From Podarcis bocagei (Eukaryota): a stretch of DNA of 64,000 nucleotides. Location of the stretch: assembly GCA_964188305.1 (NCBI GenBank), contig OZ076885.1; one strand, 5' to 3'. Within the stretch, counting starts at the first letter, position 1. Every line of letters starts with the position of its first letter. Positions 18,101-55,600 of this stretch are shown one piece after another. The notes under the pieces are model-generated. The model made no database searches, was not told where the DNA came from, and saw only the letters and a list, made by a program, of their open reading frames with translations. Both the position numbers and the translations under genes were made by a program.

Positions 18101-21100
18101 CCTCCCGCAGTTTGGTCAAACTCATGCTGGTAGCTTCGAGAACACTATCCAACCATCTCGTCCTCTGTCGTCCCCTTCTCCTTGTGCCCTCAATCTTTCC
18201 CAACATCAGGGTCTTTTCCAGGGAGTCTTGTCTTCTCATGAGGTGGCCAAAGTATTGGAGCCTCAGCTTCACGATCTGTCCTTCCAGTGAGCACTTAGGG
18301 CTGATTTCCTTAAGAATGGAGAGGTTTGATTTTCTTGCAGTCCATGGGACTCTCAGGAGACTCCTCCTGGAAGTACTAGGGTAGGGGTAAAACAAAAATT
18401 AACCCCAAATCTATTCCTATACTTCTAAAAAAGAAATTGTATGCTGTTGTGTCTCTGGTTTACCAATTGCATTTAATGGTCTTGATTCACTTTTTCAAGT
18501 TCCAATAAATATTGTTTGGCAAAAAAGGAAAAAACTGAGAGCCATCTAGGATGCAGGGAGAAACTGTGTAAATCATCAATTCTCTATTTGTGGAATTAGA
18601 AATGAATAAACTCTGGAATTCCCTCTTGCCTTGAAAAAGGGGATATCAGCATTGTAGCATCAAAAGAATGCAGTTTGAGTCTGAAGAGACACAACGTGTA
18701 GCACTGTCTCCTTGGGAACCGTGGCCAGTGGAAAGAATCTCTAGGTGTTGCAGGGAAGTTGCTGAAAAGAAATAGGTCTGTATTATTTATTGAGACTATA
18801 CTGTATTGTGTGTAGGGAAGAACTCTTGTGTCAGGCCTATTGCATGGTTCAATAACTGCCCAGAAATACAGCAAATAAAATAAAAGGTGTTACCTGTGTG
18901 AGACATGACCAGATAACCAAGAATGTGCAGGTCTTGCTCACATGAATGCTTTCAAACACATTTAACATGATCTTTGGAAGGTTTCAGTAGCATCATCAAC
19001 AGCCACTACCTTTGTTCCTGATGATCCTAATCAGGAAACTACTTTGTAGTATATGTGTGGGTGGTGTTGCTGGATATGCACTGTTTTCTCTTCCCCTGTA
19101 GCTTATGTGATTCTGTCTTAGGTTCCTGGAGGCTATTGGGGACATTCTTCTGATGGTGTGGGCTTTTCATTGCCTTGCAATGGCAGTCAGTATTTGCTAC
19201 AAGGCTAGAATGGCCTTGTGCCCCTACTGTCTTAGTTTAGTTGAAAGTGAGTATCACAAGCTGTACTGTGGTCTTTACTGAGGAAATCTAAATATATTTT
19301 TCTTGATGTCAGGAAGCTAACAATAAGTAAGTTTCCAATCTTCTGCTTTGCAGATTTAAGAGGTATCCTAAAAATAGTTTGAAGTGCTGATAGCTTGAAG
19401 ATGTTGAAGTGACTTGATTTTCCTATCACCCTTTAATATCACTGCTGTTCTTAATTGATAACATTTTGTTTAGTAGTAACTTTTCTTTTTCTTATGCGTA
19501 ATATCCATTCATTATTGCAGATTTGTCTCGTACTACTATGTAAAACTGTTTCTGCTGCTAGTAATTTTTTGTAGCATGTACCACTTTCTACTTGAAGACT
19601 TCCCAGTATTTGACTTTATAAAGTTTGCTTGAAGCAGGAGCTGCGGTTATGTTTAAAATAACACCCAAGTTTCTTTTATTCTAGATAATTGGAATGTAAC
19701 AAGCATATCACTAGTTCTATGAAACCAACAAATGGTTGTGACCTGCATCCCAATATATTTACTTTAATCCAATTTAGCATACTCATGCTAAAGCCCATTG
19801 AAAACTGTAACAGGCTAACTGTGATTAAAAGTTCGACTGATTTCAGTGGAGTTAAGCACTTCCATCTGAAATTAGACAGTGACCATGATCCAGTACATGC
19901 CAGAATTCTGATGTTCTTGATAACATAGGCCAAATAGTTGAATTCAGAATTTGATTGTTTATATCCTGCATGAGTTTTTGCAGTCTTGCTAGTTTAAAAC
20001 ATTGAAGAATCCTTCAGGTGGGAAGCCATACCTTACAATAATCTGTGAATTACAGTAATAGTAATGTGTATTTGTTTTATTTATTCAATCTATTAGTTGC
20101 TTTTTTATCAGAGGAACACAAAGCGACTTTGAGTATATAAACAGACACACATATTAAAACTGGCATAAAGGAAAAGAGGAAAAAATCTGAAAAATAACCC
20201 TGGTTTTAAAAGGCAGTACAAGCTTTATGTTCTAGCTGCTGCTGTGTATACAAATTGGGTCAGATTATGTTGCGTGGGAAGATGAAAAGTTTATATACCA
20301 CTCTACATAATACTGGATTTCATTTATATATATATATTATATATATGCAGGTTTTGGTGTCTTCGGGTATCTTCCCGTGTAAGAGTTGGGGTGTCTAGGC
20401 GACGTTTCGACAGGGCTCTGTTCTAGTAACAAGAAGCCGAAAGCACCAGCCTGAAGATGACGAGTGAGACCTCGTCGAAACGTCGCCTAGACACCCCAAC
20501 TCTTACACGGGAAGATACCCGAAGACACCAAAACCTGCATTCCTGTACCCGTGANNNNNNNNNNNNNNNNNNNNNNNNNNNNNNNNNNNNNNNNNNNNNN
20601 NNNNNNNNNNNNNNNNNNNNNNNNNNNNNNNNNNNNNNNNNNNNNNNNNNNNNNNNNNNNNNNNNNNNNNNNNNNNNNNNNNNNNNNNNNNNNNNNNNNN
20701 NNNNNNNNNNNNNNNNNNNNNNNNNNNNNNNNNNNATTCCAGCTTCTAGATAACTTTAGGCTGACAGGAATTATACATGTGTGTGCATAAGGTGCATATT
20801 CATGCATTAGAATTCTTTTATGGTGCATTTTTTTAGCTAGCAAAGGATTGCAGTGTGAATCACAGTAGACTATAACTGCATTTTCAGAAGACCAGTGAAA
20901 TATCATTAGAGTTCCAATATAATTGTTTGCTTCTGATAGTGACTCTTTAAATGTTGTGAGGATGAAATAATACTGCATGATACCTAACTCCTCTGAAGAA
21001 AAATGTAGAGGCTGATTTCTAGCGGGGTTCGGTATAAACCTTGACACAACCTGATCACCTTTCATCAACAGCCTACAGCATGATACTGCTCAAATAATCC

Positions 21101-34250: not shown

Positions 34251-35174
34251 TTGTATGGCTTCTTTTCATTTTGTAACTATTTTGAATGCTGGGTGAGCTG
34301 TTTTCTAGAATCTCTGCTGAATATGAGCGGGGGGCAGGGGGGAGACCTTGATATGGAAAAGAGGGTGGATAGATAAGACAGGTGCCATATTTTGGCTGGG
34401 TAGTAGCCCTTGTTCAGCCATGGTTTTATGTATTGCTAAACTAGTTCCAAACCCACTATGTACACATATTAACATGATTTTTTTAAAGCTTCTATCTCTC
34501 AGTCATCTCCATTTAAAGGGGAGTGTCTGGTAGCAAGCCAAGGAAAGATTTGAGACCCTTGAGAATTTCTGCCAGTGTGAAATCAGTACACTGAATGAAG
34601 ATTCGATGCTCAGCATCATTTTAAGTAGCTCCTTTAAAAAATATTTGCTCTGGAAAACATGAACAGAAATCACAGGTTTCATAAAAAGGCATAAGCATTA
34701 TGCTGAACAGAGATGGGGAAATGAAGCCATGATGGAAACAGATGAAACTCAAACACTTTGAAAGGGGATTGTGCCTTTCACGTGAAGGAAGGCAAGGATG
34801 CAAGGAAATATAATAGCATATAAGGGCTTTCTATGGCAGGAAAAGGTTCAGTTACAAGAATATTGTCCTGATTGCTAGTGGTATTCAGTGAAATGTTTCT
34901 GGGGATCATAGGCTTGCACAGATGGCTTGTGTTTCACCTTCCTGAAGGTTTGTCATAAAAGGGCATTTGCCTGTGACTGGCGGATGAGGTGGTAGTACTT
35001 TCAGAATGCAGCTTGAGTGGTGAACAGTCTGTGGGAGGGGCTTAATGCTGAGTGGGTGGGTTTACCTGGTTGCTAGGTGATGATTGTGATCTAAGGGACC
35101 AGGATTAATCTAAAGTGAGCCCAGATAACTGGTCTGATGAATGGGTACCATTCAAGTCTCTTGTCATTCTCACC

Positions 35175-36604
35175 ATGACATACTCACTAGAATTTGGCCT
35201 TGTTAATGCGGCCAACCGGTACCTGACTGCTGAACCTTTCCGTTTCCAGGTGGCAGCCACAGGCAAGCAACTGAAGCCTCGCCAGTTGTGGGTACTGCAG
35301 TTTGTGAGCCCACAGGGAGCTGGGGCAGCTGGCCCAGGAGAAGGGGCTGGCCAAAAGCTTCACCTGATCAGTGCACTGAAACGCTACTTGGCGGCTGACG
35401 CAAATGGAAAAGTCACCTGTGACCAGGACAAACCAGGGCCTCAGACCTTCTTTCTCTTGCATCAATATCCAGACGGCAAGGTGCTGTCTCTCACCCAGGC
35501 ACAAGCATCCTATCTCTCAAGTGTAGCTTATGTTCGATATTATCGGGCTGGAATTCTGGACAAAGAGGGTTGGTTGGGTGGGTGAGACGGAGGGCAGAAG
35601 GTAGGAAAACAATGCTGAAAGTTGCCTCAATAGGGCCTCAAAACTATTCCACTATTGCCCAAATGTGGGCCTCTTGTTTTGCTTACAAATGTTTTTTACA
35701 ATTAAGAGGCAGAAATGAGGGCAGGGTTGAGCTCGATTTGCAGACTAGTTTGCTGTGGTGAGAAGCAGGGTCTTTTCTAGATTCTTACGGGTAAGTCCAG
35801 GCAGCAGATTCCTGCACTCCAGTGCTGTAAAGTGCATCAGGAAGAGTGCAAAATGTCCCTGGACTCTCTCCCCACTCCCCAATGGTCTCCTTGGGAAGCT
35901 CTTTGCCCCGTGGCCAAACAGTATGATAGCCACTATGGGCTGAAGGGGAGAGAATGTGTCTGACTAGCTTATTTGAGTCCCTGTGCTAAGAGTTGCCGGG
36001 TGTATCCTTCAAGGTGCCCTAGCCACTTCCCATCCACAACTGGAAACAACTGTTGCACAATGGAATTTGGGTGATCATGGCAACTCCATAAGCCCAAAGG
36101 TGTAACGTAATTGGTGTAATGATACCTGAATTTTATTCTGCCATGTTCTTTGCTCATTGAGAGTATTCCTGCTTTTCTTGTCTTGGGCAATGTAGCTGAC
36201 CAGACATCCTTCCCTCCCTGCAGGTGTCCTTGCAAAATGAACAGTCCAAGCGCTACCTGGGTGGAGCAGAGGAGAACGTCACTTGCTTTGCCCAGGCTGC
36301 CACCGAAACTGAAAAATGGACCCTCCACCTGGCTGTCCACCCCAATGTTGCCATGTACAACCCCAACAGGAAGCGTTATGTGCGGTGTGATGATAAAACT
36401 GGGGTGCTGCGCTGTGACCGTGACATGCCCTGGGGGGCTGAATCAGTCATCACTATCTACTATGATTTCAGAGGTGGGTGGTGGCATTTTCCTATTTTGT
36501 TTTCAATTGATATGTGCATTTTTCTCTCTAATACTGTAACACACACCTCCCCCCCCCCTTTGTTGGGGGAGCGTGTTAAAGAAGCAAAACATTCTGCTGT
36601 AGGG

Positions 36605-36652
<48 letters not shown>

Positions 36653-39600
36653 ACAGTAATTCCTGTTGCAGATGAGGACTTATAGCTACCATACTAACAA
36701 GAAAGTTACTTCTTCTGAACTAAGGATTGTTTAAAGTTTTCTGTTATCCTCTCCAACTATGGAGCAGACACCTGGGGTAAGTCTGAACACCTGGAAAGAC
36801 TTGAGAAATTTGAGAGATGGAGAAAGTCTGTACTGGTCACAGGCTTTCTCCTCCCACAGTGAGAAAGTTGCTACTTTATTCTACAGATGTTTGTCTGCTT
36901 GTGATTTTACCTGTACATGAGGATTTCTAAGTGCTACAGGTGGGTGGGGTGGCCTGGGAAGGCAGTAAGTGCTTCTAAGTGGAAGGTCTTAATTCAAAAA
37001 GTTTGAGTGACACTGCCTTATTTACACATCTCTATCCAAAAGCCACCCAAGCACCTTCTAAGATAGTCCTCTGTTATTGATGTGTGAAAAAGTTCAGTTT
37101 GAGTCATTTGCATCTCCTCCAATAGGTCTGGAGTCCAATGGTGAGAGAAGGCAATTTTCCCCATACATACCAGGTGAATTCAAATTCTGTTTACCCAAAA
37201 AGTCACTGTGGCTGGCAGGAATTTTGATTTCCTTGACATCATTAATTAGCCTGGGTAATTCTTAGAACTACTAATTGCCCTATGCAAGACTTTCTGGTAA
37301 GTTAGACACCAGTGCAAACTTTCCAAATAAGGCAAGAAAGGGAATTGTCTGTGCAGAGAAGTTTCCAAGTGCAAATCCTCTTTCCTGACCGTATTGATGT
37401 TGGAGGTTCCCCACTCTCTCACACACACTTTTAAGTGAAATTGCACACTAGGCTAAAGAATCTAATACAACCAGTTTTTAAAACACACATGTAGTGTGGA
37501 TAAAGATGTGTATTAGTGCAGATGAGAACATGACTTCAATCCCAATCTCAGCCTGCATGTGCCCATGGCACATCTCACTATACCTGGGTAGGGCGTCATG
37601 GCCTCTAGCTTTATCAAGCAAACATGTAAACCCCCAAAGTAACTATGCAAGAAAAATAGGGTGTAATCTACGAGGAAACAAATGCAGTATCAGCACCACC
37701 AATGCTGTACAAAGCTGAGGCCCAATGAACCTCAACTTGCCTATCAGAACAAAGCACAGGGGGCTGTTGTACAAATGATATATGAGGTTCTGGGTAAGGG
37801 AAATACAATGGGAAATGTTAAGGGTGAACAGGACTAGCGTGCTCTAAAGGGTTGGTGTTTAGAACTGCAGGCAGGGTGGGCCTGTGTGGCAATTCTGCAG
37901 TGAAACAAGCATCAGCCCTGATGCTGCTTTGTAAGACAATTGATTTGGAGATTGTTTTCCAGGACTGAACATCAAGCTGCTGTCAACCTCTCATCTCTTT
38001 CGCCTTTGTCTCCAGCAAAGAAGTATGGATTGAGGAATGGGGCTGGCAAACTGTTGGCTTCCAACGGCTCACTGGTACCAGATGTTACCCCACAAACTTT
38101 GTACTCCCTGGAGGTGCATGGCGGCTTGGTCGCTCTGCGGGATGAGGAGGGAAAGTACTTGACTGGGCGAGAGGGTAGCATGAGAACCGTAAAGATGGAC
38201 AAACCTGGACGGGAGGAACTCTTCAGCATGGAATCCAGCCCTGCCCAGGTCTCTATGCGCTCTTCTTCTACTAACAAGTTCATTTGCTGCAGGCCAGGTA
38301 AGTCAGGAGAAAACAGCACTATCTATATTGCATTGCACTTTGTGAAGCCTCTGCAGCTGATTGGCTTTTCCTGTCTGATGAGATGGAATGTTTGTGACCA
38401 TTCCACCTGCTCAGAAAATGAGGCACAGTGGTGGTCCACATTCTGCAAGCAATGGGGCAGTTGTCAGTTTGGTTGGGTAAAACTGAGATAAGACTGACTC
38501 GGGAGGCAGGGTGAAGGCTGGGAGGAGTTCTTAGAAGGCAGGTAAGCTTAGATGCTGGGACCTCAGAGGCAAGATGGCTGAAGAGGGTGCAGAAGTAAGA
38601 AGCAGAAAAAGGGCACATACAATTGAAGTAGCAAGGATCCAGTAAGATTACGGTCCCTGAAAAAAACCACAGCATTTCTTATTAAAAGTGGTGTGACAGA
38701 AGTGCTAGGGAGGCTAACCAGAATACAAGATGGCCAATCGAAATGGGGCTAAGTAAGCTGTGAGCTGAAAAAGCAAAAACCTGAGTAAATGAATAGTGTA
38801 GCTATAGAACTGGGGAAAGAAGTCTGGAAGAAAACCATACAAAGTGCTTTGACTAGAGTAACCCAGGATGGAATTCAATGTCACTTTAAGGCAATTGTTC
38901 TGCTTCCCAGATAAACTGATTTCACCTTTCCTACATACATTGTTCGGGGTTGTCTTGAACCTGCAGAGCAGATTTGGGGGGCCATGGGAGAAGCCATGTA
39001 GCCAAAGATCTTCCATAGGACTCCCCTGGTGAGACAGGTTACTTGAATCCACACTCTGCACTCCTTTGGAAGAAATGAAGTACAGCAAGCCAGCAACTTA
39101 CGGCACATTTAACTTGTGCACAATTAATCCAGATCTGAAAGAGGATTTGAATTTAAACCAGCCTGCCTCCAAAGATGAAGATAGGAAGGTTCAAATGTTG
39201 ACACACAATGCCCCCATTCTCTGCACAATGTTTTCCTCTTTCGATCCATGAAGCACTGATTTCAGCCTGCAAGGAGTGGGCAATGGCATATGTAGGAATG
39301 CTGACCTAGGGTGTTTCTTCCCTGCCCCCTGCAGGTGCTGATCTCTACGCCAATGCTATGGCTGTCGGCAACACCGAGATCTTCCAGGTGCTGTTTGATG
39401 ACACCACAAAGAAGGTCTGCTTCCGTAGCCACAGTGGTGCATATATGTCCTTGGTGAGTGTGCCTGCCACGCATTACGAGGAACAGCAGCGATCAGGCAG
39501 GACCTAACTATGTTTCCTAACTACGGAGAAGGACGGCAGCTCGTAGGTGGTAGGGCACCTGCTTTGCATGCAGAAAGCCCCAAGCTTTTTTCAGCCACAG

Positions 39601-42396
39601 CCACTCATTCCAGTCTTGTTCCCAACCTCCTTCTGACTATATTCTACAATGGGCAATACTGAGACTAAGGAGGGAGGAAGCTGACAGGCAGCCCCACCCC
39701 ACGACTGGTTGTAAGTGAGAATGGGGGGACTGATCAAGGGCAGAGTGAGGATGGTGGGGCAGGGCCCCTTTTGCCCAAGTGGATCAGCTTCCACTGGATA
39801 CATCTGTGCCCAGATTGTGGTGCAGATTGTTCATGGTGTGCACATACACTATCTGCTATGAACCCTAGTCAGAAATTTTGCAGATTTTTGTTGTGCTTCA
39901 AAACCTATACTGCACATCTAACATACCATTTAGAAATCTTACAGTTTGGCTTCAGTCTGGGCTATGGTTCACATAGTGCAACTTGAAGTGTGAAGTCAAC
40001 AATAAAGTGGCTTTGAATAAAGCCAAGGTCCACCACCATCCCTAGCTTGCTGATGCTAGAAACCTTCCCCTTTTGGAGGTAACTACTGCTGGACTAACCT
40101 CCCTGGTATTGAGAAGCTCATGCATTGCTGTACTCTTGGGTTGCGTCACCTACCACAATGGAATTCTCAGTCTTGATGCAGCACCAAATACCTTCCACTG
40201 AAAATATATCAACATGGATCTCAGAACGTAGCTGATAAAGGGACTGATACAGAAGGTTTCTATCAGTCAAAGTAACCCAAAAACACAAAAAGCACTTTCC
40301 AACAAATGCATCCTGTCTTTTGCAGGGTCCTAATGACTGTATTAACAGCAACACCAAACAGGACAGGAATGTCTGGTTCGACATCCAGTACCAAGACCAA
40401 AAGGTGTGTCTCCGCATAGCAGACAAGCAAGTGTCCATGCGGCCCAATGGACAGCTCCTGGCAATTCCCAAAGCTGCAGGTACAAGTTGGTAGAGAGCTT
40501 CTCTTACAAGCACCAGGGCATCAGTGTGGACAGGTGAACACAGCTAGGGTGGGAAGAGAGACTGCACACTGCCAGCTGCAAATTAGCTTTAGGTAGTTCT
40601 AGGGGAAAGGAATGGAAGCGACAGCCTTGCACTAACTCCCTAGATAGCTCTCTAGAGGAATAATGTGGGGAAAGTCTTTGCACAGAAACCAAGCTGTCCC
40701 TGGATATAAAATTGGAACATGGGGAGCCAACCTTAAGCCCATCCTGTGAAATGGCTTTTTCAACACCTCAAGGGCTTCTTGTTGGAAACCAGCAACCAAA
40801 ACTTTCATAATCTTGCTCTTGCAAGATGGAATGAGTTCTGTTAACACTCCCTTCCTTACGCTTTGGAGTAGCTAACATCACTACAAATACAGCCTAGATG
40901 AAAGAGGAAAAAACACCCTAAGACTCACTAAAACACTGCCCCTCTGTGCATATAATCCTGGCCCCCAGAACTGCATACCAAGTAGGTTGACATTGCTTCT
41001 GTAATATGATCTGGGAAGCAGTCAGAGAATGAGTTCCAGTTTGGGGGGAACCACCACCAGAAACAGCTGTGCAGTTGTTGTCCATAGTGGTTACTTGAAT
41101 GAACTTTGGGGCAAATGCTACTGACAGTAGAAATCAGGATAAAACCCAAGGGAAGAACAGTATTTGAAGTCCAAGCCATTAAAAGCTTTCTGTGCCATAA
41201 GCAGCACCTTGAATCAAGTAAGAAAGACTAGAGGGAGATATTGTGAATTCTAGGCCCCTGTTACAACACTCAGCCTGGCTTCTCAGTGTGGGGTGATTTC
41301 TCCTGATCTTTAGCACTGAAGTTGACTTTCCCTGGGGAGCTGATTCCCTCTTGAGAGCAAAAGGAAGGGTGGCAAAATAGTTCTCTTTGAAAGCCAGGTG
41401 CGGCCAATGCTAAAGGTTTCCCTTGTACCTTCAGGGAAGAGTGAAGATTTCCTGCTGGTGCTGGTGAACCGGCCACTGCTTGTCCTGCACAGTGATGCCG
41501 GCTACGTGGGTCTGTGTTCTGACATGAGGAAGTTGGAAGGGAACTGCGTCAGCTATGTTGCCAGCAGCCTGTCGCTCACCGAGGAAGGCTACTACAACTT
41601 CCAAGTTGGTTAGTATGTTTCCAGGTGGGACTAAGTATATTCCAAGGGGTTGGGGTCTCCTAGTATCTGTGTTGCGAGAGAAACATGACCTACTCATAAA
41701 TGGGAGCTGCCATCAAAGGATTTTTATAAAAACAAGCCTAGGTTATACGTAGCCATAGGAGGGGGCCAAAACTTGCTTTCCCAAACCAAAACAATGCAAG
41801 AGAGCGCATCATCACTATTTCCCCCCCTTTGCCCTTTGTTTTGCTCCATGACCCCTGGACAATAGTTTCCTAGGCCCAATTAAGGATAAACTACTGTTCA
41901 GGTTGGATGGCCATCTGTCATGGTTGATTTAGCTGTGATTCCTGTGTTGCAGGGCGTTGGACTAGATGACCCTTGGGTCCCTTCCGACTCTATTATTCTA
42001 GGTGTCGGTCATGTTTTCACTTTATACATGGTTTCTTTCTAAACCATACCTAGTATTGCCATGACAAGCACATCCTAATTACCTGTGATTCTTTTACCTC
42101 GTAAAAGTCGGAGAGATCCAAGAGCTGGTCTTGCCACACCTCTACCTTCCCTGACCCTCACCCTTCCTTCCACTAATTCTGCCACTTGACCTGCAGGCAG
42201 CAAGTACTGGGCTCTGGATAACGATGGACAAATCTTGGTAAACAGTGACCGTCCCAGCAATTTCACCATCCAGTTTGCATCCTCCAGCTGCCTGATCATC
42301 AAAGCACCCAACAACAAGTTTTTTGTGGCTGAGCAAGGAGGCCGACTATGGGCAGGGGCTTCAGACGCATCTGGAGCAACACTGTTCCATTTCTGA
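35175..42396 (+). CDS. Divergent fascin-family actin-bundling protein (four beta-trefoils), 7 exons, 494 aa
   Basis: Exons 35175-35480, 36224-36473, 38016-38297, 39335-39453, 40326-40479, 41435-41608, 42197-42396; phases 0,1,1,0,1,1; 1485 nt open frame. Collinear with fascin-1 motifs: FGLVNAANRYLTAEPFRF, RYLAADANGKVTC, RYLGGAEENVTCFAQ, EKWTLHLAVHP, DRDMPWGAESVIT, LVNRPLLV, KYWAL. Start context caccATG; AATAAA at 42423. Confidence 0.92.
36607..36650. repeat. (CA)n microsatellite
   Basis: About 22 CA units in intron 2 of the fascin-like gene. Confidence 0.95.
41900..42000 (+). mobile_element. CR1 LINE 3' fragment
   Basis: GTTGGACTAGATGACCCTTGGGTCCCTTCCGACTCTATTATTCTA tail. Confidence 0.7.
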
Positions 42397-42422
42397 GAGC
42401 ATCTGACCTTGCTCTTCCCACC

Positions 42423-42428
42423 AATAAA
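42423..42428 (+). terminator. Poly(A) signal of the fascin-like gene
   Basis: AATAAA 26 nt after the TGA, followed by T/GT-rich sequence. Confidence 0.65.
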
Positions 42429-43431: not shown

Positions 43432-46400
43432 TCAGTAAGAGTCCAAACTGCAGAAAATATAGAGCGAAACATGAGGATCTTAGCAACAGCAACAGCAAAT
43501 ACCTCTGCCTTCTTACCCAAAGTACAGTGGAACAGACTGAACACCTATTCCAAGGATGGGGAACCTGCAGGCCTCCAGATGTTGGAATCCAACTCCCAAC
43601 ATAGCCAATAATCAGTGATGATGGAAGTTGTCTAGCAACATCTGGGGAGCCCATGGGTACTTTATCCCTTTGTATTCCATTGATTCCCCTGTTTGAAGAA
43701 ATAAGCCAACCAACATAAATATATGATAAGCCACCTGTGCAATTTAGCATTACAACATTGAGCCTGAATCAATCAGAAAAAGAACGTCAAACTTGCATGT
43801 TCTCCCACAACAGCCAAGGAGGACTTCAGCAGGATTTTGTGTTCTCTATTTAATTAAATTTTTAAAGAATCCTAGCTTAGCATTATGTCTGAATCAGGAA
43901 TCCTGGTTTAAAACTCTGGTAAGTGCCATAATAAATCAACTTCACACTATGGGTTACAAAGTTGGCTTCTTAAACTGATCAGAGTTACAGTATACCAATT
44001 TCCAGAGAGTATAACAGTCAGGCTTGCATTCAACACAGCGCTAAGAAGAAAGATTTCTCCTTGTGCAATTGAGCATATTCCCCACCTGCATGCCCCTTAA
44101 ATCTGCTCTGGGAATGGCATGGAGCACAGAAGTCCCACTGTACTAATACTAATCCTTGCACTAGTGTGGATATTTGGTTGAATATTGTCCAGTTTTGGGG
44201 GGACATTAAAGGCTAAGCTAACACATTTATTACAGCTTAAGCTAGTCCATGAAAACTTATGCCATAACTAATTTGATACTTTTTAATGTGCCACAGGACT
44301 TTTGTTGTTTTAAACCAGGATCCTTGGTTCCAACATGACGCTAAACAGGGATTATTTAAAAATGAAAGTAAATCCTTCCACGTCCTCCCAGCCATAAAGG
44401 AAGAGGATATGGGGACTCACACACGAGCCTGAAACTTCACTTAGACCTTTCCATATAGCACTAAACCCAACATTACATGTAAATACAGTCAGTGTCTTAA
44501 AAAACAAAATCTAATCAATGCACATAAAAAAATATTTCCCTAAAATACCATAATGGTAGGCAAGTAAAGTACCTGGAGAAGGCAGCCAGAGTGAGAACAC
44601 CCAGTAACAGCTCCACAGCATAGAAGAGGAGGAGGATAGCATTAAGGATGGCCTCCAGCCGCAGAGCATAAGTCTGCAGCAGCAGATAATAGGCTGCCAT
44701 CACTGCTGCTGGAAAGGTTAAAGCCAGACTGATAGCAAGTGGCACTTTCCGTTGACAGAGGTTCCCTTTTGAGCCTGCCATACACAGAAAATATTAAAAA
44801 GAAAATGCATAGACCTGTTCAGCATAAAAGCCACAGTATTTGGAATCTGAGGGCACAAAATGAATAGCTCTACTTTTCAGGGATCAGTTCTCATTTAACT
44901 AAATAAGTCAAAAAATAACTAAATAACTCATTTAACTAAATAAGTCAAAAAATTGTCCAGTAGCACCTTCGAGACCAACTAAGTTTGTTCTGGGTATAAG
45001 CTTTCGTGTGCATGCACACTTCTTCAGATACACTGAAACAGAAGTCACCAGAACCTTATATATAATGGGAGGTGGGGTGGGGTATTTCTCAGAAGGGTAG
45101 TAGAAGATGGGTGATTGACTCAATGGGTATGGTAAATCTGTTGACGACTGAACAATTTTGTAATTTAAAAAAAAATTTTTTTTTAATTTTTTAAAAAATA
45201 ACGTTTTTTTAAAAAAAAAACTTTTATTTTATTTCGACTGCATCAGACCAACACAGCTATCTACCTGAATCATGAATCATTTAACAGAGAATAAGGAATG
45301 GGATTTTGCATTTAACATTTGTACTGTAGTTCATAAGCTAGTCTCAGGTCAGGAAGGACAGTCAGACTAGATAAATGGGATCTCATATTTCCACCCACAT
45401 AATGATGTCTTGCCTCCTACCTACTCCCGAATTAGGGAATGTACCACAGAGCCCCTTTTTCAGCCTCATTTCATTGGAGGCACCTATTCCAGTTCAGCAG
45501 AATAATTAGGAAGGCCTGGAATGATGGAGTGAAGGCACTGTCAGCAATTTACACTCTGCTCAACTACTCTACTCTCAAACACCTTTGCTGTTGGAGAAGC
45601 GGAATTTATCGATGAGTGAACCACATTAACAACAGCAACAACAATAAATTTTATTCATATCCTGCCCATCTGGCTGGGTTTCCCTAGGAGTCATCTTTTC
45701 AGGTCAAGTGCCATCAAAGATGCTCACAAAATGGCAGGTGAGTGCACTACTCGTGGGAACATTTTTATTGAATACTCACCAAAAAATATCCGGGTCACTT
45801 CAATCCCAAGATAGAGAAAAAGCATAATCAGGTCCAAAGCCAAATTGGCAGAGGGGTAGGGCAACAGGAGTCCTAAGCGGGTACACAAATGGACATGTGC
45901 ATTAAGAGAACAGCAAAGCCAGATGCCTCTTCCCATTTAATGAATTCCTTAATAAAAGAAGAGTGTCTGATGTTGGTTAACATCTAATGTAGCAGCTAGA
46001 ATGACAACAAACACTGGGACATGGATGGTTCTGAAAAAGGCTGTGAACTCTTAAGCAGCTAGGTGAAAAATAATTACACTATCCACTTTGTTCTTTCACT
46101 TTCTTCAGGTGAGAGCCACAAGGTAAATGCGTAAAAAAAGCCTGCAGGCAACCCAAACATATCATCCCTTCAAAGACTCACCTTTATAGACAAATATGAA
46201 AATCTCCAGCAGAAAATATGTTGCGTAATACCAGCCATTCAGGAACAGGAGAATTTCCAGAGGGGTAGAGGATAGTTGACGATCTAGGAGGTGAAACCAG
46301 AATATGATTATCTATGGGGTACACATTTTGTGTTCCACTCTCACCTCTTAAAGAGGAGCAGTACAAACTTTCTTGAGAGACTATATTAGAGTTTATGTAC

Positions 46401-47367
46401 ACTTCCTCTTGTCCCCCTGCTTTCCAGCTGAATCAGAGCCAATGGCAATTCTGGTTTTCCCAGGACTGCCATTTGTTCCAATCTATCCCAAGGTGGGTTT
46501 TCCCTCAGAAAGGAGCAGGGCAAAGGGTGTGAGTCAAGCAGAAACTGCTGCTAAGAAGCCAAGCACCAATGAGACAGTCTCAGTTCTGTTCTAAACTCAG
46601 TCAACAGAGACAGGTGTGAGGTGAAGATTGTCAAAATGGAAGCCCTGAGATGACAACAGCCATTAGGGGACGCCAATATTTGTACAGGGCTGGACAAGGG
46701 CACAGAACACAAGCCTTGTGTGCAGCTAATCTTCATTTTGCCTTTCTTGCATTTGGGGGTGCACTGGACGTCGTGAGCTCAAAACTGGGATGCTGCGGCC
46801 TCACCAGCTTAGCGTGGAACCTCAGCAAATGGTCTAACATACCTCAGGCAAAGGGAAACCAACCAGCAGCAGAGAATAAAAACCCCAGCCCACCGATCTG
46901 AACCCCTTGGAAGGGTCCAAAACCCCGTATTTGGGCAGCTTTACGCTAGGAGAGGGTTGCGAAGCGGCAGCCTCCCGCAGGACGTGGCCCCGAGTCTACC
47001 ACCCTCCTTTGGCAGGATGGTTTTTCTGGGGGAGCTCAGCGATAGGCTGAGCCAAGAGGCCCCTCATCAGGCTCTGGGGACCCGGGGGCCACTCTGCCTC
47101 CTTCCCCTTCGCTCCGGCTATTCCTCCCGCCTGGGGAGCGCTTGGCGGGATGCCGTCGGATCCCCGCCGTCGCTGCCGGGCTGCAGCCGGAGCCCAGTTC
47201 CCGTCCCTGCTCCAGGGCTCGGGGTGTCCTGGGCGGCGGGCCGGGCGAGCGGGGTGGGAATCAAGAAGAGCCGAGCCTTCCACGGGGATCAGTCGCGGTG
47301 ACGTGACCTCGCAGCCCCCAGGGCCCCTAGAACGCTGCCGGGACCCCGACTTACTGCGAGGCGCCAT
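43432..47367 (-). CDS. TMEM216: Transmembrane protein 216 (ciliary transition zone), 5 exons, 141 aa
   Basis: Exons 47367-47355 (MAPR), 46283-46182 (RQLSSTPLEILLFLNGWYYATYF), 45872-45780 (LLLPYPSANLALD), 44774-44573 (SKGNLCQRKVPL...LAAFS), 43447-43432 (SLDSY*); 426 nt. The tiny last exon is less certain than the others. Confidence 0.93.
44937..45277 (-). mobile_element. Penelope-like non-autonomous element
   Basis: Minimal hammerhead motif at 44994-45031; flanking TCATTTAAC repeats at 44928 and 45278; local tandem duplication at 44891-44953. Confidence 0.65.
44994..45031 (-). ncRNA. Minimal type I hammerhead ribozyme motif
   Basis: Minus strand reads GUAU CUGAAGA A GUGUG-CAUG-CACAC GAAA GC UU AUAC: conserved core, stem II, palindromic AAGCUU in place of stem III, 4-bp stem I. 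Confidence 0.65.
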
Positions 47368-47760
47368 CTTCCATCGCCATGGAAACCGCTACGCAGGAAA
47401 CCCACTTCCGGCGAAGCTGACTGCACGGAAGCGGGAGAGGGCGGAGTGGCGCGCAGCGTTCGCGGAGGCAGAAAGGTCTGGGTTGGCGAGGCGCGCGCTC
47501 GCTCCCTAGCTCGCAACCAGCACGTTAGACCGAATGGACGCAGAGCGGAGCCGCTCTATCCCTGGCCTCTTTGTGCCGGAAGACCCGTTAGAAAGGCAAA
47601 AAGCTCCATGCGATACCGGATATCGAACCGCGTCTCTTTGGGGCGGAGGCTCAGATTCCGAGCGGGGACGGCGTCGCCTCGTCTCCATGAATGCTACCCG
47701 CGCGAGTTGTGGAGGCAGGAAATAAACGCAGGGGCTCCGTTCTCTCACCTTCTGCCAAAC
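46950..47760. promoter_or_regulatory. TMEM216 CpG-island promoter with RFX X-box, YY1 and ETS motifs
   Basis: ATCGCCATGGAAAC at 47373-47386 (X-box); GCGCCATCTT at 47361-47370 (YY1); ACTTCCGG near 47404 (ETS). Confidence 0.75.
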
Positions 47761-48979
47761 AGCGACACCTATTTCTTTGCTTGTTATGTAACGGCCCCGT
47801 TTTTCTTCCGCCCTTTCCTCACACGCACATTTTTATTTTAGATTTTACAAGTTTTTTCCCCGGGAAGTGGGGACAACATACACACACGCGCATCATACAA
47901 AGCACCTCGGATTGCTCAGTTCACGTGGCCCAAATGGCACGTAGCTCGTATATATCCGAAAATCCACTCCCAAATCCACCACTTAACAAGTTACCCAGCA
48001 TCCCCTCCTGCCCTCGAAAGCTTTTTTATTATTCTATCAAAGGCCCACAGCGTTCCACAATTAATTCTACTGTTAGGAGTCCTGCCCCACATTTCAGAGT
48101 ACAAGATTTCCTGGGTATTGCGCTTTAGGAACAAGCTTCTGTTCCCCCTCCCAGTTTATTTTTTCTGTGAATTTCATTATCTTACCCTAAACCACACACA
48201 TGCCAGGCATAACGAAAACATCCATTTGTTTTCTGTATTGGAATGTTGCTAAATTATATGGTTTATTTTTAGTATCAACAGCACAACACAGAGAACTGGT
48301 GGTAATAAATCAAGCCTTGGAATGGAAAGAACACCCTTTTACTACCACACATTAGAGAAAAAACAATAAAGCAAGATCACCACACTATGGTTTCTGAAAA
48401 AGAGCCGATTTATTTTCTCACCATTTATAAAAATGCAAGTACAAAAGGGGAATCTAACAAGTCAATGAGAGTACATTTGCTCAGGCTGAATACTGCAAAG
48501 CCAAACCATAGTCTTTATTTCTTGTCGCACTGTCAGAGGTACTAGTGAAGGCAGGAATCCTTTTCTGCCACAGGGGAGCTTAGGGCAAGAAAATATTCTC
48601 AAGGAGGAAAATGCAGCATTGCTACTCAGTGGGAGTTGTCAGCCAAATCTGTTTGGCACTTCAAATCGTTCCTCAGTAAGGCTTCAGCCAAATCCAGAGT
48701 GCAGTTTGCTGAACTGAAAGGAGGACTGTGGAGTGCTTGGAGACTGAGAAGCATATAGTAGCAAGCAGGGTATCCACAAAAGAGCAGTTCCATTGATGAG
48801 TAGCCTAATGTGCACGAATGTAGGAAAGGGATGAAGTCATTTGACCACATGAGATTTAGAACTTGACTGTAGGAGACAAATTGTAGTGGGAGGAGGGGAA
48901 CTTGCTGCAAGATATTGGTAAAATCTCTGTGGACATTCTAGCAAGCTGGCCTCTGCTCCAAATGATCCAGAAGCAGCTG

Positions 48980-51900
48980 TCAACTGTGTGCTTGTGCAAA
49001 CTCTTTCCGTAGCCAAAGAGAGTCCTGGTAGAAACGGGGATCTCCCAAGTGCACAGCCGTCCTCTTATAGAAGTAGTAGTACAGCACAGCCACTGCAACC
49101 AATCAGAAATAAGTCACAAGCCAGCAAGGTCAACACCTGTATCAACTTTACTATTTTCTTACATTCAACTTCACCATTATCTCCCCAGCTACACTCCCCC
49201 TGCTCCCTGTCCCATCTACTTTCTGTGGGAAGCACAGATGGAACCAGCCTCATTGATAAATTTTTAAGCTTTGCTCAGAAGTCATAACACAGGGGAGAAA
49301 TGAAACAGCCTCGTACCCATTCTCTGGAAAACAAAAAGAGTCTGCAGCCCATCTGTCCACACAAAATAGTTGGAATTTTTCCAGCGGAGGTTCTGTGGGA
49401 AAGAAATGTATGAAATATTAAAGGCAGGAAATAGACTGTTCCTCCCAGAACAACACAAAACAATACCAACCATCCTTTCAGACTTTCTTCAGTGCCCCAT
49501 CTTTCTACCAAATTCCTTCAGAAACATGGCTCCCATTTTCCTACTCCCAATAATTATTTATATATTTGGGAAGCAGCAACATTCCTAACTCCTTCTCTTG
49601 AAAGTTCAGAGATTGTTACAATCTCAAATAAACATTCTAGAAACCATGCAACAATCCAGGACAACAAAGGCCTGTGGTATCCCATTGATTGGTGTGTCCC
49701 CTTCCTACATCCCACTCAAGGAAGCTTCCACATTTTTTCCAAGTATATTAAACCAGGAGTTATGCAACTGTATCTATAAAAATATTTTCACAGATAAAAT
49801 AAAAACCAAAAGTTGACCCACATTAAAATTAGACACAATATTTGTTGAGCTTGTTGGAAAAAAGAGTAATGATGTTAGTTCCACTACTAGAGAGTTTCCA
49901 AAACTCATGTTCCCAGTCATAATAGGCTATTCCAAGTCTTTCTTAACAGTTAAGCAACCAGACACCACATGGAATGGATGCCAGCACTCGGAGCAGCTCA
50001 GGGAGCAAAGAAAGGTTAATCGGATCAGCAGATTTATACAGAACAACCAGACCTATTCTAGCTCTCAACAACTGATCACAGAAAATCCTCTTAAATCCTC
50101 CTGCCTCACCAAGCAAGGTTTAGGAAAGCAGTAGTACCCAACTTTCAAGCTAGATTGCTTCATCTAACTTCAAAGATGAGATATTAATTCCCTAGATACT
50201 GGGACTTAACTACAATATGTACCATTTTGTCCAGTGTATTCTAGGCAGGTTTACCATTTACAAATAATGGCATGCAATCTTAAAAGAAAGAGTAAAAAAA
50301 GAGATGGGGAATGAAAAGGAAAATAGGCACACTAAGTTATTCAAACTGGAAATGAGGTAAGATTGAAATAAATCTTTTGTTAGCCTCCGTAAAGCCCTCA
50401 CTCATCTAAAGAGAGCCAAAGAAATCCATAGGGAGGTACTAGACTATTGAGGCTGTAAATATGAGAAGGTTTTTGCCTTCAGTGCAGTGAATTCATATCA
50501 ATGCAAGCACTGCTTTGGAATTTAAACATTCTGTTCCAAGAAGCCAAGGGTGCTGTACCACGAACTTTTATGACTCTTTGGCAATATAGCCCATCATCAT
50601 TGGTAAGTCATTGCATGTCAATGACACCTGTTCATTGTAGTTGTTTGCTCCACTGAACAAAACTTGGACTGAATTTAAATATGTATCCTTCAGTTAGGCA
50701 GCTGGACAGCAAGACACACGAAGAACCAGGAATAAGGACCTCGTTTTTAAATCACAACATCTGTTGATATTTGAAAAGTAAATCACACAGATCATTGCCT
50801 ATTGCGACAACAGCAAAAATGCTGAGTGCTTACAATGGATCAGGGTGTCAAACAGAAAATACAGTTTGATCAACTAAAAGCTCAGAGACCAAATATACTT
50901 CCTGGCCACTGTTCCAAGACAACTTCTGCACAGCTTCCTGACGCTTCCAAATACCATGGAAACCTACAAATCTTTTGTCCCAAATGCTTCTGTCCTCCTT
51001 CCCTTTAATTACCCAAATTACAGTGACCTCTGTTAAACTTCACAAATCTGTCCAGGAAAAAAGGTGAATGATATAACAGTTATTAAAGCTCAAGGTATGT
51101 GATATAGGACAAATGCCCAGGCACACTGCCTAGAAGGACAAGACAAACCTAGGAGATAACTACAGAACCGAGCAAATAGAGCCAGAACAAAGCATATATT
51201 GCTCATTCTATGAGACTGCAATGATCCAATGGGCTCACCCCAATCAACTAATAGCAAGAGTCAATGGAATAATGGGCTGTGAACAACGCTGCAGCCAAGA
51301 AACTTACTTATACAGCCAATAATCAATAAATTAGAGAGGCCACCTTTATACAATATTACAAAATCGTAGCAAACATATAACATTTCAACCAGACTTCACT
51401 AGGACTACACTAATGCCAGTACTGAGCAAATTAGTGAGTCACATTCCAATACTCCATTTGTGTCCATAGCTGCAGCTGCAAATCAGCATGGGTAGTCATG
51501 TATGGCTGCCTTTGACAAAACTGCAGATAAAGTTTGGAAGTCTGTTATAAGAATCAAAATATAAATTTTCTTCTTGGTTCTTTTGAAAAAGACATCAGTC
51601 TTCCTTATTGTTGGGATTGTTTGTTTTTGCTTCATAAAAAAGAGAGTTAAAAGATTAAGAATAGATTCTGCTACAAGCATACTGAGCAGTGTTAAGGGGT
51701 ACAAAGTCTATACATTACATTGAAAAGATGTGAAGACAGCATGAAGGTGAAATGTTTTGGTGCATGAAGCAACAAGAGAAACCAGGAAATTGGGTGGTGG
51801 GGTGAATCTGAAGGATGAGCTGTTGCCTACACAGCTTCCAAATCATAAAAAGTGCCAGTAAACCAAGTCAATCAAATGTTAATAACCACTCAACTTACAC

Positions 51901-54696
51901 ATAATCACATGTACATAACAAGCTTGCCCTCAGTAAAGACCATAAGAGGGCAACTATGATGGACGATACAATACGTTAACTTAGGGTGCTTTGTGTGATT
52001 TGCTATCACATGAATACAGTATTAACAAAACGTACAATAGACCACTTAAATGACAGCTTAGGCAATTATTGCAAGGCCAATCATTTTTCATGGATCTCAG
52101 ACACAGATATCTAAAAAGAATAAATTAATGTGAGCAGAAGTCAGTGTAACAAGATGTCCGAAGAAAACAAGAATAATGGAGCACACTGTAAATTATGCTC
52201 ATCAAAAGCAAAATAAAAGTATGCTTGTTCAAAAAGATCTTAGAAAAAGAAGTGATTGGTATGTATGCAAGAAGTCCAGGGTGTGATGGTGAAGAACAAA
52301 GGACAGCTGAGAAAAACAGAACTGCCCAAAGGGGGGGGGGGGACTGGTCAAAGAAGACTGTAAGACCTCCTGTATCCAGCTAACCCTATCAGTAGGAAAT
52401 TCTAGCTTTATACTAACAAGATTCTGAAAGGTTGGAAGGTGAATTAGCATGCCAAGCCACAATAATATATTGCATTATAACAGTTGCAACAGCTAGGACC
52501 CCTTCCAGTTTATCCTGTTTCATCAGACGAGCTTTTAAATGTCTTAAATACTATTTGGTTTATCTAATCCAACTCCTTCCCAGGTCTTTATTCCTGGGAA
52601 CTCCTCAACCAGTTCAATGAGACAGCTACTGTTCTACAAATTCTGCACACATTATTTATCACACAGAAGATGGTACAAAAACCTGAGCTTCTTTTAAAAA
52701 TATAATGAGTGTTGAAACAAATTTGGAAATCCACAGGTGGTGTTTGCAAGGGATTCCTAGGGTTCAATAGAGAGCACTTCTATCTCTTCCACAGTTCCCT
52801 GTCGTAACCTAACCTGTAAGTTTCTTCTATTCATCCCTGCTCTTGCACAACATTTCTTCCATTTACCATACTGCTTTTTTGTTACATCCAGACCTCCATA
52901 TTTAAAAACTACAGAGTGCTAAACCTGGGGGGAGCATAAAATAAAGTTTGTTTCAACGTGTGTTTTCTTTGCTTGCACAATTACTCCTGTATTCAGAATC
53001 TGGGCTTCCTTGATAACCAGTATAAACAATCCTCTCCTGCCTTACCATGACCCAGATGTGGAAGGATATGCTCAAACCAAGGTATGTTGCTGACAAGACA
53101 ATGGTCCCTTTAAATTTCTGGAACAGAAGATTAACCAGGCCAGCCTGGAAGACGAAGGTATTGAAGAACATGAGGAAGATGATGATGACATTGAAGAGGA
53201 TGGCAATATCCTGAATGCTGTAAGGCAGGCAAACATTTTAATGAGACAGAGATTGATAGATACCTTATACACAGAGGTATACCTAGGTTCCCTTGCATCC
53301 TTGGCATCACACGCACACCCTGGTCCCTTGCACAATTGCATTTCTCCACCGAAGCACCCACAGGAGCCTGCATGCTTTGCCCAGCCACCCATAGTATTGG
53401 AGGAGCAGCCCAGGGAGCACACGAACAGGCAAGCAAGTCCCTAGCCACTCCAAGCCAGAGTGGAGAGGCACAATTTTTGTGCACACTCTCCAAGCCTGCA
53501 CTCTTGGCAGGGGCTCACCTAACCAACTCCTAGGTATGCCGCTGCTTGTGGCTCTCCAAATACTACTAGACACCAGCTCCCCACCACCACCCATGGTCAG
53601 AGATAATGGGAGTTGTGGTCCAGCAACGTTTGGAGGGCCACAGGCTCCCCACAATTGTGGCTCAAGCCTAGTACTTGGAGAACAAAAAGCAGATTAACAT
53701 AGCTGCAGAGGTTTTCACTGTCCATGCTGCCAAGTGAGACATTAGTCCACTAATTGCAGAGGAAAGGGAACCCCGAAACCCTTTCTAGAAGATTACAATG
53801 GAAATAATACCTGCTGCAGCTATCTCTATTTCCCCCTGCTTATCACTCATTTTCATAATCTGAGTGTAGAACTTTATGTAATGGCAACTGAGCTAACAGC
53901 TGCTAATACCCACAGAGAAAAGATAGAATGAATGGATTATAATAGCACCACCCCTTTAAAAATATCATTCAACACAATACAGCCTACTAACTGCCGATGT
54001 TTCAGGAGTAGGGAAAGAATAATAATTTTCTTGGTATCTTTTATTCTACTTCATTCCTCCATTCATCTCTTCTCTGGCACTCTCTTCTTCCCATTTTCCT
54101 GAATGAGAGTGTCCCAAGAAGAGCAGAAACAAACAGAAAGTGCATTCCTGTGCATGTTTACTCAAAAAAGTTCCACTGTGTTCAATGTGGCAAATTCTCT
54201 GTAATCCTAAGCACATTTACTATGGATCAAGTCCTCTTGTATACATAAAGGCTTAAGCTGCAATCCTATGCACACTTACACAACAGTAAGCATGACTGAA
54301 AACAATGGGACTTCCTTCAGAGTCAACATAATATATAAGATTTCACTGTTGCTCCTGAGTAGACATACTAACCATCTCTTCTCCATTCCAAATCACTTAT
54401 TCAAGCACTAGTCTACAGTTCTGACCTGAAGAGTAACTACGTTTTTGATCCCTACAGCTTATTTAAGAGCTCATAGCACTGTTGAGCATCTTTTCAGAGA
54501 CAAATGTATACAAGCCCTTTAAAAAAACCCCAGACAGTGACAAGCACCCACTGTTGTGCCATACTCACATGAAAAGCACAAGCTGGATGACGGGCGCCAT
54601 GCGCAGCAGCTCCGAGAAGGAGTTGACAAAGAGGTCATAGAACAGCAGTAGGAACTGCAAGGAAAGCACCAGGCTATAGTTGCTGGTTTGGAGCAT
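48980..54696 (-). CDS. TMEM138: Transmembrane protein 138 (ciliary), 4 coding exons, 162 aa
   Basis: Exons 54696-54569 ([30 protein letters not shown]), 53217-53046, 49392-49317 ([17 protein letters not shown]), 49092-48980 ([27 protein letters not shown]...*); 489 nt. Noncoding first exon donor at 55388/55387. Confidence 0.96.
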
Positions 54697-55179
54697 CTTC
54701 CTTGCCTCAGTGTCTGCATCCCAGATGAGAGGGACACCTCATGCTCACACAACAGAGGGATACAAACTTTTTCCTCCAGCGCAATCACTCATAGCTCCCT
54801 TTGGGCAGAGACCTGAAACCTGCAGAAACACCAGGTGGGGGGGAAAGAGGGAGAATAAGGTGAGCAACACTTGCAATAATAGCGGGGAGGGGGGCATCAC
54901 AAATCTGGAGCACACCACACACAGTCAAGCACTAGAGAGCAAAGATAAACCAGTCAGAAATACAAACAATGAATAAGAATCCCTTTGTTGAAGTAAGACT
55001 GGTTGCACCGTTAACTGCTACTGCCTAACACTGTTCTTAACATTTTTCGGTGATCTAAGAACTTTACTCTTGCTGCCCCTCCGCGGCTTTTCTCCTATTT
55101 CTACACAGGGGAAAGCAAAGCACGAGGGTGGGTGGCGAGGGCTGACTGGCCACAGCCACCTCCAAGGGGCTGGAAAGGG

Positions 55180-55600
55180 CGCCTTTTCTTCCTGGGCAAC
55201 ACGGATCAAGCGCCACGGACCTCATCTCCTTGGTGATCAAGATTTCAATCCGGGTACACGCGATCTCGTTCTGTGGGCTCCCAAGCGCCCTCGACCTCAC
55301 GCTCCCCGTGTTAAGTAACGGGGCACGACAGGTCGCGAAAGATAGGCCCGTCGCTGCTCCAGCTCGCTCTTTGCTCCCGGCCCTCACCTGGCGCGGCAGT
55401 TGCCCGTTCCCATGGAGACGGCGCAGCCACTCAGGGGAGCGTAGGAGGCAGCCTGGCCGGAAGCTGCCGCCCTTGCGGTCACGGTCACAGAGTTGTAAAT
55501 GACAGAGCGGACGGAGAATCTCGTTGCCCGGATAGGAAACTTCCGCCCTGCCTCTGGAAGCCATTTATAAAGTCTTCCATGGGGCGGAAGTGAATGCATC
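55180..55600. promoter_or_regulatory. TMEM138 CpG-island promoter with RFX X-box and ETS motifs
   Basis: GTTCCCATGGAGAC at 55406-55419; GTTGCC half-site at 55523; ACTTCCG and CGGAAGTG ETS motifs at about 55539-55592. Confidence 0.72.

Follow-up and report, generated by a model that had tools for sequence, protein, structure and literature searches.

A deeply conserved fascin gene beside CPSF7 in the lizard Podarcis bocagei, and its relationship to the recognised vertebrate fascins

The fascins of the vertebrates are counted as three (PMC7698196, PMC3529353), and the question raised here is whether this count is complete. The locus in question lies in a 64,000-nucleotide stretch of the genome of Podarcis bocagei (assembly GCA_964188305.1, contig OZ076885.1), referred to below as the window, in which a fascin gene is found on the plus strand between genes of the CPSF6/7 and TMEM216 families. 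A preliminary description of the window had interpreted this gene as either an old paralog or a relocated, fast-evolving copy. The gene is genuine and ancient, and has the look of a functional one. It belongs to a fascin lineage, labeled L here, whose separation from FSCN1 and FSCN2 is firmly established, while the proposal that L is a fourth fascin lineage or ohnolog, separate also from the mammalian FSCN3, has in our estimation an even chance of being correct.

Gene model, cassette exon, and selection

When the seven exons (35175-42396) were spliced again, the coordinates, the six GT-AG introns, and the uninterrupted frame given in the preliminary description were all recovered, and the joined sequence of 1485 nucleotides (nt) encodes 494 amino acids (aa) and a stop, with no internal stop codons. 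Exon 1 (35175-35480) opens with the ATG and encodes residues 1-102, that is, the first half of trefoil 1 with its Gly/Ala-rich loop, while exon 2 (36224-36473), which has AG/GT borders and is entered in phase 0 and left in phase 1, encodes residues 103-185 plus one nucleotide. Exon 3 (38016-38297; residues 186-279) covers the second half of trefoil 2 and ends at the donor CAG/GTAAGT, and exon 4 (39335-39453; residues 280-319) is followed by a phase 0 intron that is specific to the L clade. The remaining exons are 5 (40326-40479; residues 320-370), 6 (41435-41608; residues 371-428), and 7 (42197-42396; residues 429-494 and a TGA stop), the last of which completes trefoil 4. The start context is also good, with an A at -3 and an in-frame stop upstream (35106-35108), and the poly(A) signal AATAAA is present at 42423-42428, 27 nt past the stop, as had been claimed.

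The search against Pfam that had been suggested for the product places it in the Fascin family (PF06268; curated gathering cut-off 23.1 bits), with scores above the cut-off in exons 1 (39.3 bits), 2 (23.6 bits), 3 (37.2 bits), and 7 (28.6 bits). Exons 1 and 3 match the human fascin-1 chains at E values of about 1e-17, with exon 1 aligned to residues 11-100 of fascin-1, and exon 3 to residues 185-269 (E 6e-17). The seven-exon model is not a chance assembly, given that a RefSeq protein of Lacerta agilis, named “fascin-like”, is identical at 490 of the 494 residues, and that the same length of 494 aa is shared, without gaps, by the proteins of a python, a monitor, an anole, a rattlesnake, and a cobra. 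The gene is, then, already present in pipeline annotation, with RefSeq “fascin-like” entries in dozens of species.

The L. agilis RefSeq protein has 16 additional residues, which correspond to a 48-nt exon (GLESNGERRQFSPYIP) that is also encoded in intron 2 of the window gene (37126-37173, plus strand), flanked by AG/GT borders and running from phase 1 to phase 1, with a product of 510 aa. This cassette inserts 16-19 residues at an L-specific intron within trefoil 2, and amounts to 19 aa (57 nt) in snakes and geckos; a matching isoform of 513 aa is listed for anoles, and RefSeq holds two isoforms in several species. The cassette is the sole part of intron 2 that can still be aligned between the window and the python (82% over 198 nt), and the alligator and frog do not have it. 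On these alignments, it is to be regarded as a squamate-specific exon, conserved as an island inside an otherwise unalignable intron. The same intron contains a (CA)n microsatellite (36590-36650), one frame of which reads HTHTHT and so on.

Selection was evaluated through Nei-Gojobori counts of homologous exons only. In the comparison of the window with L. agilis, 29.5 synonymous and 4.5 non-synonymous differences were counted, with a synonymous divergence (dS) of 0.094 and a ratio of non-synonymous to synonymous divergence (dN/dS) of 0.043, and in that with the python Liasis, the counts were 152 and 69, with a dS of 0.70 and a dN/dS of 0.09, every exon remaining below 0.14. Judged from these coding sequences, the gene is under strong constraint within the squamates, and the purifying selection claimed in the preliminary description is borne out. 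Its alternative of an old paralog or a relocated, fast-evolving copy fared unevenly: the old, intron-bearing paralog stands, and the fast evolution does not, with dN/dS at 0.04-0.09 and the protein well conserved across the squamates; the heavy divergence of L is old and lies on its stem. The window gene is the lacertid copy of an intact and selectively maintained fascin of four beta-trefoils.

Distribution, phylogeny, and genomic position of the lineage

The relatives of the gene were recovered by an exhaustive HMMER search with exon 3, which returned 128 matches, and then by word-indexed searches with the relatives found. The members of L include many squamates, whose proteins have 494 aa and reach about 513 aa when the cassette is included, together with turtles, both alligators, the basal frogs Ascaphus and Discoglossus, the coelacanth, sturgeons, the paddlefish, a chimaera, and two sets of shark and ray proteins. 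The names that automated annotation has given to almost all of these proteins are “fascin-like” or “fascin”. In these searches, no protein from a mammal, a bird, a teleost, or any other amphibian fell within L, and the “fascin-like” proteins of the teleosts group with FSCN1. The RefSeq model of Alligator mississippiensis (582 aa) has an N-terminal extension of approximately 88 aa (L005:10001-10252) that has no counterpart in other L proteins, and probably reflects a wrong start; a second alligator L protein has 498 aa (P0312).

In a maximum-likelihood tree of 47 proteins (LG+C20 with posterior mean site frequencies, PMSF), L is monophyletic (support 100/100), with a stem length of 0.96 changes per site, and both the FSCN2 clade (100/100) and the FSCN1 clade (100/99) stand apart from it. 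The possibility of nesting within FSCN1 or FSCN2, which would have told against the preliminary description, is thus answered, with L outside both of the supported clades. All three lineages lie within a vertebrate clade (98/98) above amphioxus. The position of L as sister of FSCN1 receives support of 92/85, and a constrained tree that joins FSCN1 and FSCN2, with L outside, is not rejected by the approximately unbiased (AU) test (p 0.116), so the branching order of L among the vertebrate fascins is not fixed by these data, even though its separateness is. The lineages also coexist, with an FSCN1-type protein and an L protein in the rattlesnake Crotalus adamanteus, and FSCN2 and L in turtles. 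Two further proteins were set aside: P0128, which stood beside L in a FastTree tree, is a long-branched fascin of a sponge, and P0062 is a poor FSCN1 reference, alignable only over its first ~270 aa.

The position of the gene in the genome has been conserved as well. Pfam searches of the flanking open frames identified, in order, Sdh5 (minus strand), RSLD_CPSF6 (plus), the fascin (plus), Transmemb_17 (minus), TMEM138 (minus), and cytochrome b561 (plus), so the location between CPSF7 and TMEM216 given by the preliminary description is correct for the window. The order of CPSF7, L, TMEM216, and TMEM138 is kept in the python, and that of L, TMEM216, TMEM138, and cytochrome b561 in the alligator. 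In Ascaphus, L is followed by an unnamed gene and then a TMEM216-family gene, and in the sawfish, a CPSF6/7-family gene precedes L in a shared orientation. Thus, L has been located directly downstream of CPSF7 since before the split between the sharks and the bony vertebrates, and, in the tetrapods, it also adjoins TMEM216. The reach of the clade into the cartilaginous fishes, where the CPSF7 linkage is kept, upholds the earlier claim of an old paralog, rather than a recent copy or a retrocopy.

Gene structure provides a third line of evidence, for which each protein was mapped exactly onto its own locus and the introns are given in the amino acid numbering of the window; no gene with the exact product was on record for the Varanus L, Pelodiscus FSCN2, or Bufo FSCN1 proteins. 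The introns of L fall at residues 102 (phase 0), 185 (phase 1), 279 (phase 1), 319 (phase 0), 370 (phase 1), and 428 (phase 1), and these columns are common to the lizard, python, alligator, frog, and sturgeon, with the exception of the last sturgeon intron, which maps 14 residues later, next to a 16-column gap in the truncated protein that was used. The sawfish L gene lacks only the first intron (residue 102). The FSCN2 gene of the turtle, which has five exons, the first of them large, has introns at 279.1, 330.2, 370.1, and 427.1 (residue and phase), and those of amphioxus lie at 279.1, 329.2, 382.2, and 427.1. Intron positions 185.1 and 319.0 are found in all the L genes, and 102.0 in those of the bony vertebrates, and none of the three occurs in turtle FSCN2 or amphioxus, which marks three features of L as derived: intron 185.1, the move of 330.2 to 319.0, and, among the bony vertebrates, intron 102.0.

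The contrast with the two better-known paralogs can now be specified. The window protein lies outside the FSCN1 clade, it is encoded next to CPSF7 and TMEM216 rather than ACTB, and the position of Ser39 of fascin-1 is occupied by Gln32. While L resembles fascin-1 (FSCN1; structures 1DFC, 3LLP, and 3P53, and complexes with F-actin 8VO5 and 9GXI) in its length, its four beta-trefoils, and its collinearity, it differs in its separate, long-stemmed clade, in an insert within trefoil 1 that is rich in Gly and Ala, and in its gene structure, where two introns are extra and a third has moved; its introns at 279, 370, and 428 are also found in FSCN2, the amphioxus genes, or both. Fascin-2 (FSCN2), the fascin of the retina and hair cells, has the same fold as L, with 33-34% identity, and the two descend, as vertebrate paralogs, from a single ancestral gene, but FSCN2 forms its own clade and its gene has five exons, in comparison with the seven of L.

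The second set of L proteins in sharks and rays is encoded without introns, in a single frame of 1464 nt for 487 aa (Pristis pectinata, L002:10001-11464), and the copies are 74-87% identical among sharks, rays, and skates (P0009, P0153-P0159). Given the lack of introns, and the grouping of this set with the first (100/97), it is a retrocopy that arose within the cartilaginous fishes, and it looks like an old retrogene that is functional.

Returning to the window, the neighboring genes are SDHAF2 (about 9.5 kb, minus strand), the CPSF6/7-family gene that is read as CPSF7 (about 11-30 kb, plus), the TMEM216-family gene (44.5-47.3 kb, minus), TMEM138 (within 44500-55500, minus), and, from 60 kb onwards, a plus-strand gene for a cytochrome b561, taken to be CYB561A3. 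The TMEM138 and TMEM216 genes follow each other head to tail, both on the minus strand (44500-55500), as they do in the alligator and python, an arrangement that has been described as characteristic of the amniotes; at the frog locus, the stretch compared reaches TMEM216 only. The gene predicted between the fascin and TMEM216 in Ascaphus truei (L004:16357-20057; 275 aa) belongs to no Pfam family and contains no convincing open frames. The CPSF7 introns of the window include an open frame (18015-18395, minus strand) that resembles the C-terminal part of the reverse transcriptase of a long interspersed nuclear element (LINE) of the BovB/RTE type, with no Pfam match, and a run of 181 N (20555-20735), which is either an assembly gap or a masked stretch.

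Alternative explanations and the FSCN3 question

The evidence described above bears on two alternative explanations. The gene might be a relic without expression, or an artefact of gene prediction, intact in looks only, and the fragments found in Logan (assemblies of public sequencing runs), which are unspliced single exons that read through into the introns, do count in favor of this and against the main reading, as does the 5’ flank, which has no CpG island. On the other hand, a relic would hardly retain the excess of synonymous over non-synonymous differences (29.5 to 4.5, and 152 to 69), nor the frame, the length, and all six intron positions from sturgeon to lizard, nor a cassette conserved as an island with intact splice sites and reflected in paired RefSeq isoforms, and this explanation has a very small probability. 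A relocated, fast-evolving duplicate of FSCN1 or FSCN2, specific to the reptiles, would account for FSCN1 being the named protein with the highest identity to L (37%), and for the sister position of L to FSCN1 in the tree. This explanation is contradicted by the breadth of L, which takes in sharks, a chimaera, sturgeons, the coelacanth, and frogs, by the CPSF7 linkage in the sawfish, and by dN/dS ratios that are not those of a fast-evolving gene; in addition, the FSCN1 and FSCN2 clades are each supported at 100% without L, the gene structure has characters particular to L, and the tree with L outside FSCN1 and FSCN2 is not rejected, so a duplicate of this kind has a probability of practically nil.

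The relationship with FSCN3 is the more demanding question. In mammals, FSCN3 is located beside PAX4 and ARF5, but not so in fish (PMC3563606; less specifically, PMC3759438), and the mammalian block is GCC1-ARF5-FSCN3-PAX4 (PMC3759438, PMC3563606). The window order (SDHAF2, CPSF7, L, TMEM216, TMEM138, CYB561A3) is different, and nothing recognizable as GCC1, ARF5, or PAX4 was found beside L at the sawfish and frog loci. In addition, a separate “Fascin-3, partial” (ETE59238.1) has been recorded in the king cobra (PMC8635378), in which the complete L protein is ETE72421.1, and ETE59238.1 is not among the snake L clusters. The different locus and this second cobra protein are the points in favor of L being a lineage of its own, in which case it is probably the sister of FSCN3, and was lost in the mammals.

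The alternative is that L is the true ortholog of FSCN3, with its ancestral place beside CPSF7, and that there are three vertebrate lineages rather than four, for which we would allow somewhat less than an even chance. FSCN3 would then have moved on the mammalian stem to the interval between ARF5 and PAX4, or been copied there with the loss of the parent, and subsequently become testis-specific and diverged very rapidly, a course of events that is possible, at a probability likewise short of even. Several observations favor this alternative, and thus weigh against a separate fourth lineage. The distributions are complementary, as hidden orthology would produce, with L found only outside the mammals and FSCN3 documented only within them, and far fewer gene losses are needed than under reciprocal loss. 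The last 114 aa of the paddlefish L protein (P0318), in trefoil 4, are named “fascin-3-like” by RefSeq, and the L protein of the elephant shark is named “fascin-3” in GenBank. The two extra introns of L, in a region that is a single exon in FSCN2 and amphioxus, give it seven exons, and Tubb et al. are said to have reported in 2002 that FSCN3 also has seven, as against five in FSCN1 and FSCN2. The existence of the intronless copy in the cartilaginous fishes implies that its parent was expressed in the germ line, which recalls the testis expression of FSCN3. It should also be borne in mind that the vertebrate lineages covered by the 47-protein tree are L, FSCN1, and FSCN2.

Other observations count against orthology. 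As L evolves slowly in the squamates, orthology requires a very large burst of change on the mammalian stem, and both the different genomic places and the second cobra protein must be explained away. In a Foldseek comparison, L was 26% identical to FSCN3 (template modeling score, TM, 0.89), but so was the model of a toad FSCN1, and, with both equally far from FSCN3, this value cannot tell a sister from a stranger, and may be a saturation floor. Other results favor neither side: no FSCN3 was found among the 128 matches of the HMMER search with exon 3, nor in the word-indexed searches with a shark L, a profile of seven L sequences, or a repeat profile of the four cobra trefoils, since FSCN3 is too distant from L to be matched in this way. 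Neither did the ESM Atlas matches separate the paralogs, whether the entire protein or just trefoil 4 was compared, and a sperm-proteomics supplement contained no FSCN3 peptides. On the side of a separate lineage, the C-terminal W-E-[FY] has been lost in every L sequence, while FSCN3, we assume, retains this ancestral motif. Motifs that L and FSCN3 presumably share, by eye (NF, Y-x-F with an extra residue, PN, VS-x-RS, and GL-x-AL), and the L-wide loss of the C-terminal Trp and deletion of 2 aa, which we take to be lacking in FSCN3, are leads only, and not evidence. Fascin-3 of the mammalian testis is like L in being a divergent fascin that is neither FSCN1 nor FSCN2, and two L proteins bear its name, but the two differ in locus and share only 26% identity.

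If L is indeed separate from FSCN3, the jawed vertebrates would have begun with four fascin ohnologs, including an “FSCN4” that has stayed next to CPSF7 for over 400 million years, a proposal that stands at an even balance. At the same even odds, this gene may have survived in the cartilaginous fishes, sturgeons, coelacanth, basal frogs, turtles, crocodilians, and squamates, while the mammals, birds, teleosts, and most amphibians would have lost it in independent events.

Predicted properties of the protein and their significance

The fold was assessed on the Varanus ortholog, which is 89% identical to the window protein. Its AlphaFold model is all-beta, with a predicted local distance difference test (pLDDT) score of 91.4, and has one disordered Gly/Ala loop at residues 48-56 (pLDDT<50). 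Superposed on solved fascin-1 (3P53/7ZAU), it reaches TM scores of 0.90-0.93, with 37% identity over about 500 columns, so the chain of about 490 aa forms, on this ortholog, the four beta-trefoils of a fascin. Residues 1-494 of the model are aligned with residues 8-493 of human fascin-1, in agreement with the end-to-end collinearity described previously.

The basic residues that mutagenesis studies have assigned to the actin-binding sites of fascin-1 are kept in part. In the alignment, the basic positions of fascin-1 appear in the window protein as K22R, K41K, K43R, R271K, K353K, and K358R, and R398 and K399 are not kept. Given the fold and the conserved basic residues, the L monomer may, by analogy with the behavior of fascin-1, cross-link parallel actin filaments through the sites formed by trefoils 1/4 and 1/2. 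The serine at position 39, the protein kinase C (PKC) site, is replaced by Gln32, and Ser274 is replaced by Cys; Ser39 is kept in the L proteins of the frog and sturgeon, and not in those of the alligator or sawfish. By the same analogy, the squamate protein would not be switchable off through Ser39, and would also be without the Ser274 phospho-switch. The C-terminus of L is F-H-F, in comparison with W-E-Y in fascin-1.

The putative promoter region in the 5’ flank (34500-35174, plus strand) has a CpG observed/expected ratio of 0.15-0.25, in comparison with 0.8-1.1 at the CPSF7/SDHAF2, TMEM216, and TMEM138/CYB561A3 promoters, which are CpG islands. A CpG-poor flank of this kind suggests that the expression of the fascin gene is restricted to some tissue.

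The tree, the synteny, and the intron characters define a further, well-conserved fascin lineage that is not covered in the accounts of the family cited at the outset (PMC7698196, PMC3529353). It has been annotated by pipelines, but is undescribed as a lineage in the literature found, where the vertebrate count remains at three. The window protein itself represents a natural fascin without the Ser39 switch. If L is the ortholog of FSCN3, the testis fascin would have a deep and slowly evolving counterpart, which would show where it originally lay and what form it had, and would date both the relocation and the rapid change to the mammalian stem. If L is a fourth ohnolog, a revision would be due both of the history of the family and of the actin bundlers available to the non-mammalian vertebrates, and the textbook count of three fascins would prove to be a mammal-centered artefact.

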